Assembly: GCF_020745735.1 (NCBI RefSeq)
Contig: NC_083435.1
Span: 46,438,498 to 46,502,497 of the forward strand
Origin: Hemiscyllium ocellatum
Taxonomy: Eukaryota
Direction of reading: 5' to 3'
Length of the DNA: 64,000 nt
The notes beneath the pieces were generated by a model, which saw only the letters and a program-made list of their open reading frames with translations, did no database searches and was not told where the DNA came from. Of the stretch, positions 44,107 through 45,574 are shown piece after piece; position 1 is the stretch's first letter, and each line of letters opens with the position of its first letter. A program made the position numbers and the translations under genes.

Positions 44107-44245
44107 GCAGTCATAGAGTTGTAGAGATGTTAAGCATGGAAACAGACCTTTTGGTCCAACCTGTCCATGCTGATCAAGCATCCCAACCCAATGCAGCCCA
44201 CACCTGCCAGCACCCAGCCCATATCCATCTAAACCTTTCCTTTTC
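44107..44245 (-). mobile_element. CR1 3' terminus (~140 bp) forming the 3' end of the ALKBH5 cassette
   Basis: Matches the other CR1 3' ends in the window (e.g. 30950-31085), including the GAGTCATA-type tail. Confidence 0.85.
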
Positions 44246-45039
44246 TTTCATTGACTGACATTCTCGAATACATGAAAAACAGATTTGACCTCAATTTAAG
44301 AGGACTTGGACACATAAATACATGCTATAGATGGTCAGAGAATATCCCATAGCAGTTTAAACAGCAGGAACGGGGGCTTAGCTCTGTGAGCCTTTGTAGT
44401 CACGTTTCAATAAGATGATTGATGATCTGTAGCTGAACAGCTTACAAACATCTAAGTCTCAGATTTCAAATTACCAAGATAGCACTGGTAAACTGCAGAA
44501 ATAAGTTCCACCAGTACAAGTCGTCCAGCTCCTGTCCTGAAAGCCTACTTTTGGCTCATTCCAGTGTCCCAACATGCCTAACCAATAGCAAAAGCTCATT
44601 GTAATGCATCATACGCGACATCAGCTGTCACACAACATTCAGACAGGTTTTATTAGACAAGATCTAGCTTTACAAACCGAAATGAAATCAGCCAGTGATA
44701 AAATAAACATCATGACATAAATGGAAAGGGGAAGGAGTCAGATAAGTTACAAACCAATTTCAAAAAGCTTCGTTCTGTATAATGTTATCTAAAGAATAAT
44801 AGCTCGAATGTAAAGTCTTAAATCTTCCTACTAGGAAGCAGCCAAAAATGTATGCTATAGAATTTGGATCGTTTTTGGCAAAATTCATATCGCCTTACAG
44901 AAATCCGAAAGGTAGCGTTGACATCGTTTTCATTAACTCCTGTCCCAACCCTCCAAAGGTGGCAAAGACTGTTGGAACTTTGTGAAAATGACACTCTTGA
45001 ACCGCATTACAAGAGCCACTAATTCCATTTGCCACTGAC

Positions 45040-45574
45040 CTAAGCACAGTGACACACTCTCTCCGGACAGGTAAATAGTAAACCGGCTCTGATACCCAAA
45101 GGGGCTGCAAGTGGAACTTGCCGCTGAAGCTGGGAACGGAAAAGATGGGCCTTTCGAAAATGTGGATGGGATCCCGGTGGGAGAAGAGGCAGCCACCCGG
45201 CTGATAGTCACTGACGAACCTTCAAGGATAATCCGGTGATCCATCAGCTTCTTGATGATCAGGTCATGGACCCACGCAGGGATGTCCTCCACGTCTCCCT
45301 TGAGATACAGGCGCTTCTGGCCAGCTCCTCGTTTCCCAACTGTGAGCCGTAGGTGGAGCCTTCCCCGAAGAAGTCTTTATTCCACAAAGTGGTGCTGTTC
45401 ACCGTGTGGCCCCGATAAATGTCCTTCTCGGCCCCGGAAACCATGCTGTTGATTTGTGTGTTAGTCTGGGTACACTGGTCGCCAGTGAAAAGCCACAACT
45501 GGCAGATATTCAGTTTCACACACCGGGCCTCTCCCTGCCGCTCGTCGTACTCATCGCTGTGGTGTTTTGATGCT
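45040..45574 (-). pseudogene. ALKBH5: ALKBH5 (m6A RNA demethylase) exon-1 fragment, frameshifted and internally deleted
   Basis: Three-frame mosaic: EARCVKLNICQLWLFTGDQC...AEKDIYRGHTV...[15 protein letters not shown] / [39 protein letters not shown] / [28 protein letters not shown]...[18 protein letters not shown]. Human ALKBH5 reads [20 protein letters not shown]...[57 protein letters not shown]...[25 protein letters not shown]...VSEPVLSLPVRRGSVTVLS. Ends at donor AG/GTCAGT (45040). Confidence 0.92.

Follow-up and report, generated by a model that had tools for sequence, protein, structure and literature searches.

In the 5' transduction known from LINE-1 and SVA elements, transcripts that begin at a host promoter take an upstream flank or exon with them; the platypus snoRNA-RTE retroposons ('snoRTE') ride on the 3' tail of a stringent LINE. 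SINEs also ride on such a tail (PMC3747384, PMC5729268, PMC4176376), tail recognition underlies their mobilisation (PMC3747384), and for L2-type LINEs experiments have demonstrated that the cognate 3' stem-loop is strictly recognised (PMC4176376). CR1 and its SINEs end in a hairpin and an 8-nt microsatellite, features regarded as necessary for the CR1 reverse transcriptase (PMC8665684, PMC5729268). CR1-type LINEs are considered to yield almost no gene retrocopies, since their reverse transcriptase demands its own hairpin-plus-octamer tail (PMC8665684, PMC3136929). Very few retrocopies are reported for the CR1 clade, and few for genomes dominated by CR1 (PMC3136929).

Within a 64,000-nucleotide stretch of Hemiscyllium ocellatum DNA (hereafter the window), a 53-bp satellite array is broken by ~1.47 kb of non-satellite DNA, all of it inside one 53-bp monomer (Table 1). 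This cassette very probably arose when the enzymes of an active CR1-like LINE, acting in trans, retrocopied a fragment of unspliced ALKBH5 pre-mRNA. As in LINE-1 and SVA 5' transduction, host sequence lies 5' of an element tail, the transcript would have started upstream, and a 5'-truncated copy would have been made in one pass from the element 3' end. Unlike in these systems, the element is a non-autonomous CR1 stub of 137 bp with neither poly(A) nor target duplication, recognition would be by hairpin and octamer tail and not by an A-tail, and 1.3 kb of exon and unspliced intron are carried. With SINEs and snoRTE the cassette shares the joining of a foreign RNA to a LINE 3' tail, to be mobilised in trans by tail recognition, but its head is a piece of Pol II pre-mRNA from a protein-coding gene instead of a small-RNA gene with an internal promoter, and it is a single dead copy (two with the parent) instead of an amplifying family. 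Mammalian processed and semi-processed pseudogenes are likewise RNA-derived, promoterless, 5'-truncated and subject to neutral decay. In contrast to the classical processed type, however, the cassette keeps intron 1 (from 45040/45039 onwards), its 3' end lies inside that intron and consists of CR1 octamers, not of poly(A), and its driver is CR1-like.

Table 1. Features of the cassette, its host satellite, related CR1-like copies and alignments to shark ALKBH5 genes. Positions are those of the window.
Feature	Position	Strand	Description
53-bp satellite, left arm	42427-44104	.	Tandem Repeats Finder; terminates ...CCCTGTCTCACTC
53-bp satellite, right arm	45576-59929	.	Tandem Repeats Finder; starts CATTACTTACATTG
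ALKBH5 exon 1 pseudogene, 5'-truncated	45040-45575	-	~codon 57 to 3' end (codon 246, phase 2)
Exon lesion, 1-bp deletion	45331/45332		frameshift
Exon lesion, 16-bp deletion	45217/45218		frameshift
Exon lesion, 21-bp deletion	45121/45122		7 codons, in frame
ALKBH5 intron 1, first ~794 bp, unspliced	44246-45039	-	collinear with intron 1 of three sharks
CR1-like LINE 3' end, 5'-truncated, ~137 bp	44105-44245	-	last ~52 nt of ORF2, 3' UTR and tail
3' UTR hairpin of CR1-like element	44133-44171	-	RNA fold
CR1 tail repeats	44105-44126	-	octamers CTCTACAA, CTCTATGA, partial third CTGCAT
CR1-like family copy	27492-29508	+	79-82% identity range to cassette tail
CR1-like family copy	30953-31803	-	79-82% identity range to cassette tail
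CR1-like family copy	34724-35779	+	3'-end match to cassette tail
CR1-like family copy	39799-40422	-	3'-end match to cassette tail
CR1-like family copy	61061-61819	-	3'-end match to cassette tail
Alignment to Chiloscyllium punctatum ALKBH5 (L001)	45567 to 44125 (into CR1 tail)	coding strand	L001 3172-4608; 78% over 1502 columns
Alignment to Rhincodon typus ALKBH5 (L002)	45567 to 44246		L002 3172-4582; 75%
Alignment to Stegostoma tigrinum ALKBH5 (L003)	45567 to 44246		L003 3172-4563; 73%

An earlier reading by a model that had only the sequence (hereafter the sequence-only reading) had placed a 5'-truncated ALKBH5 exon 1 on the minus strand, and protein comparisons bear this out. A 60-residue piece (45042-45221, minus strand) matched solved ALKBH5 chains at E 2e-17, and the same piece matched ALKBH5 representatives in a library of 1.8 billion proteins at E 6e-13. 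Among ~170 vertebrate ALKBH5 proteins, the best four tblastn matches to the cassette were chondrichthyan, with a cluster of galeomorph-shark ALKBH5 ranking first (127 of 186 residues identical). A Pfam search of the pseudogene pieces gave no match, and a further protein search of read assemblies yielded no shark contigs with exon 1. The exon ends in ...CTTAG at 45040, followed by the donor GTCAGT, just where the boundary AG/GTCAGT had been proposed, and the same exon 1 boundary, GTGCTTAG/GT, is common to the ALKBH5 genes of all three sharks compared, namely C. punctatum, R. typus and S. tigrinum.

The encoded protein is split over three reading frames. It had been said that the iron ligands survive but that two frameshifts and two deletions make the copy non-functional; the H-x-D motif indeed reads SHRD, and two of the three deletions listed in Table 1 shift the frame. 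No nonsense codons were found in the homologous frame segments of the exon copy. The 74 exon substitutions seen only in the cassette fall on codon positions 1, 2 and 3 in the numbers 35, 18 and 21, respectively, and 13 of the changes are CpG transitions. The cassette furthermore has no promoter and lacks exons 2-4 as well as the first ~56 codons. With two frameshifts, a seven-codon deletion, the truncation and this spread of substitutions, no intact reading frame under purifying selection was found, and the ALKBH5 copy is non-functional: it was dead on arrival and has decayed neutrally since.

The three ALKBH5 loci used for comparison all belong to Orectolobiformes. Intron identity to the cassette was 83% in C. 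punctatum, 79% in R. typus and 77% in S. tigrinum, and in all three species 44246-45039 is collinear with the start of intron 1, a correspondence that the sequence-only reading had named as a check. Intron 1 of C. punctatum is ~22.7 kb long and contains, at L001 4486-4729, a 244-bp insert; the corresponding site is precisely empty in Rhincodon (L002 4580-4587) and Stegostoma (L003 ~4560-4570). Of this insert, the initial ~140 bp (L001 4486-4625) are a CR1 stub, truncated 5' at the same point as the stub of the cassette, situated ~750 bp into the intron and sense-oriented relative to ALKBH5. Given the precise empty site in both other sharks, the stub was a discrete insertion in the parent and was inherited by the cassette. 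Within Orectolobiformes, and with polarity read solely from that empty site, the stub appears as a gain of the hemiscylliid lineage. Found in bamboo sharks but not in whale and zebra sharks, it is a tidy presence/absence marker within the order. The remainder of the insert (L001 ~4626-4729) is the tail of a second, different transposable element; two different LINE/SINE tails thus stand head to tail in the C. punctatum intron, which suggests that tails attract further insertions.

Contigs from four runs, representing two samples and two studies of H. ocellatum (one of the samples may be the assembly's own source), were matched to 43900-45800 at a likeness of at least 80%. Besides the cassette itself, they revealed one second copy, with ~85-92% identity to the cassette. 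An 894-nt contig of this copy runs from inside the stub (44180) across 44245 and through the intron to 45088, while a 1350-nt contig covers 45145-45548 and then continues for ~930 nt upstream of the cassette 5' end. Of the 21 sites listed as differing between the second copy and the cassette, 19 have the letter of C. punctatum ALKBH5 in the second copy, as compared to 13 of 21 for Rhincodon and Stegostoma. H. ocellatum is accordingly a close relative of Chiloscyllium, and the second copy is its real ALKBH5 gene, which carries the stub as well. Depth in the unique part corresponds to one or two single-copy contigs, so there are two copies in all, the cassette and its parent, and the 10-15% difference between the cassette and the parental copy makes the cassette a separate locus.

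A CR1 3' fragment at the corresponding intronic position, another feature that had been singled out for checking, is accordingly present both in C. punctatum and in the parental contig. The sequence-only reading had left two origins for the CR1 part, a resident intronic copy or a template switch. Given the same stub, at the same place and with the same truncation, in both sources, the resident copy stands and the template switch does not; with the stub already resident in the parental intron, template switching becomes unnecessary. As for the outer limits, the cassette begins at ~codon 57 while the parental contig and L001 both continue upstream, as in a 5'-truncated copy. On the other side, homology to the source ends at the CR1 terminus, both in the alignment and in the comparison of C. 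punctatum with R. typus.

The ~140 bp of CR1 3' end with tail that had been recognised from the sequence proved to belong to a family bearing a reverse transcriptase. The segment 44109-44245 matches the 3' ends of at least five longer copies in the window, all of which extend further 5' than the cassette does (Table 1). An RVT_1 domain was found in the family at E 1e-14 (28318-28614, plus strand), upstream of the same tail, and the family ORF stops 82 nt before the element end. The tail consensus, derived from six copies, consists of the hairpin, then two CTCTATGA octamers and a C (...CTCTATGACTCTATGAC). In the cassette, the hairpin folds at -30.9 kcal/mol (z -2.4) with an outer stem GCAUGGA/UCCAUGC and an inner stem GGACC/GGUCU, and the same hairpin forms in the family copy at 30953-31045. 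Both the cassette tail and the family thereby display the hairpin and 8-nt microsatellite of the CR1 clade, and the hairpin at 44133-44171 is the presumed binding site of the reverse transcriptase. The C-terminal ORF2 motif of the family is one that we take to be of CR1 type. Together with the tail architecture, this places the element as CR1-like, the copies in the window being 5' truncated.

The copy at 27492-29508 is fairly young and has an open 269-codon C-terminal ORF2 segment (28617-29426, plus strand) with RT-bearing ORFs upstream. It is also 94.6% identical over 336 bp to an inverted copy at 30953-31287, the two forming an inverted pair ~1.4 kb apart. At 44092-44283, the summed depth of CR1-tail contigs of at least 80% likeness amounts to hundred-thousands to millions, which puts the tail family among the most abundant repeats of the genome.

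At the 5' side of the cassette, parent homology extends to the last letters before the satellite, and at the 3' side the octamers are immediately followed by the satellite, in register. On the simplest reading, the flanks ...CACTC and CATTAC... make up a single consensus monomer that was cut cleanly; the insert is then 44105-45575, and 0 bp are duplicated. This agrees with the proposal that the cassette splits one monomer exactly, and no satellite base was lost. The further proposal that TCAT was duplicated at both junctions fared less well. The letters are there (44103-44106 and 45575-45578), but in the array CACTCCATTA is present 116 times and CACTCATTA is absent, which makes a TCAT target-site duplication doubtful; on these monomer counts it was rejected as probably a coincidence, leaving 0 bp duplicated. 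One classical hallmark of LINE retrocopies, the target-site duplication, is therefore missing, although it is not obligatory for CR1, whose insertions frequently show only a short one or lack it. The satellite letters GA after CTGCAT would complete a third octamer, and GA/TC may represent a 2-nt priming microhomology. Sequence spanning both junctions, which had also been sought, is available in both samples. Exact contigs with 0 differences cross the tail/satellite junction (43982-44159, both samples), the passage from stub via intron to exon (44206-45088, both samples) and the exon/satellite junction (45145-45670 and 45145-45713, the junction being covered in both samples).

The cassette is thus collinear, in sense orientation, with a transcribed unit (45567 to 44125 against L001 3172-4608), its intron is kept and its 3' end coincides with a LINE 3' terminus, all in line with the earlier suggestion that an unspliced pre-mRNA was retroposed by means of a CR1 tail. 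The sense source, the 3' end at a LINE terminus with hairpin and repeats, the 5' truncation, the clean insertion and a parent that continues on both sides together fit target-primed reverse transcription. In such a course of events, CR1 ORF2 protein would have bound the stub hairpin on an intron-retaining ALKBH5 transcript, and the satellite would have been nicked between CACTC and CATTA. Priming would then have taken place on the octamer repeats, possibly via the GA/TC microhomology of 2 nt, and copying would have run back through stub, intron and exon 1 until it ended or was cut off at ~codon 57, after which the cDNA would have been joined without target duplication. Since the pre-mRNA normally runs past the stub, either initiation would have been internal or the template would have been a cleaved or degraded RNA; downstream sequence is tolerated in the R2 and UnaL2 systems. 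The locus suggests that initiation can occur at a tail inside a long pre-mRNA.

Alternatively, a 1.47-kb genomic piece of the ALKBH5 locus could have been pasted in at the DNA level, without passing through RNA, by ectopic recombination or during the repair of a double-strand break. The retained intron and the lack of both poly(A) and a target-site duplication are as such a process would leave them, and satellite arrays are break-prone. It would, however, have to account for one end lying at the terminus of a sense LINE 3' end. The ~34-kb ALKBH5 gene contains just two tails of the family in sense orientation, so that a breakpoint placed at random would be expected to fall within 5 bp of one in ~6 out of 10,000 cases. 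Moreover, the tail keeps its hairpin and octamers, with an extra partial unit, no satellite base was lost or added as filler, and the other end looks like ordinary 5' truncation. Homology running past the transposon boundary, as in a segmental duplication, was looked for and not found: it stops at the tail terminus, whereafter the satellite resumes in register. We therefore consider a duplication of DNA improbable.

The two other explanations are less probable still. Reverse transcription might have started on a genuine CR1 RNA and jumped to ALKBH5 pre-mRNA after ~137 nt, making the chimaera at the moment of insertion. LINE reverse transcriptases are known to switch templates, and such switching has been proposed for the heads of CR1-mobilised SINEs (PMC5729268), but the junction at 44245/44246 pre-exists, with the same truncation point and flanking intron, in the C. 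punctatum gene and in the second copy of H. ocellatum. This parental CR1/intron junction refutes the switch, which was accordingly rejected and to which we give very little credence. Satellites are also hard to assemble, and there are N gaps elsewhere in the window, so that ALKBH5 reads could have been joined chimaerically into a collapsed satellite. Against this, contigs with 0 differences lie over both junctions in two samples from two studies, and depth equals that of a single copy, which makes an assembly artefact extremely unlikely.

The retrocopying of pre-mRNA by way of a resident CR1 tail had been put forward as a gene-capture route distinct from ordinary processed pseudogenes. As a principle it is not new, being predicted by the tail recognition of stringent LINEs (PMC4176376, PMC3747384, PMC8665684). 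Tail-dependent mobilisation in trans (5' transduction) is known in principle; its use by CR1 to capture part of a coding gene with the intron unspliced is an unusual case, and one without function. No description of a CR1-driven capture of this kind was found in the part of the literature covered, which is weak evidence of novelty. The locus provides a clean case, found in nature, of the exception that is predicted: a host transcript bearing a CR1 tail is copied, intron included. As the copy is non-functional, this single locus has no biological consequence. It does provide a search image for genome-wide screens, i.e. a gene fragment terminating at a sense-oriented CR1 terminus. More speculatively, and with the odds rather against it, reverse transcriptase may, in shark genomes rich in CR1-like elements, regularly enter transcripts internally at CR1 stubs that lie in sense orientation within first introns. 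Promoter-proximal exon and intron fragments would in that case be spread genome-wide, providing a route for exon shuffling and gene fragments that is wholly missed when retrocopies are screened for by intron loss and poly(A).

The age of the retrocopy was approached through the intron. Sites uniting the cassette and C. punctatum against Rhincodon and Stegostoma numbered 58, with 5 in conflict, and these patterns place the insertion after the split of hemiscylliids from the whale-shark/zebra-shark lineage. Since the parental-lineage split, 35 private intron changes have arisen in C. punctatum and 58 in the cassette. The per-lineage intron divergence of the cassette event exceeds the intron divergence between Rhincodon and Stegostoma, and in terms of relative divergence the insertion is old nevertheless.

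Lastly, some further features of the window were noted. In the satellite arm 45576-59929, periods of 106 and 159 outscore 53, a hint of higher-order structure of two or three monomers, and the monomers adjoining the insertion show above-average divergence for the array. Positions 1-4000 show an extreme GC skew (~-0.83 over 4 kb), probably owing to another strand-biased simple repeat or satellite, and three N gaps are situated near the window start, at 1678-1807, 2953-3104 and 4321-4734. At 23950-24600 there is a GC-rich block (67% GC) with internal repeat units ~250-260 bp apart, as indicated by blastn self-matches.
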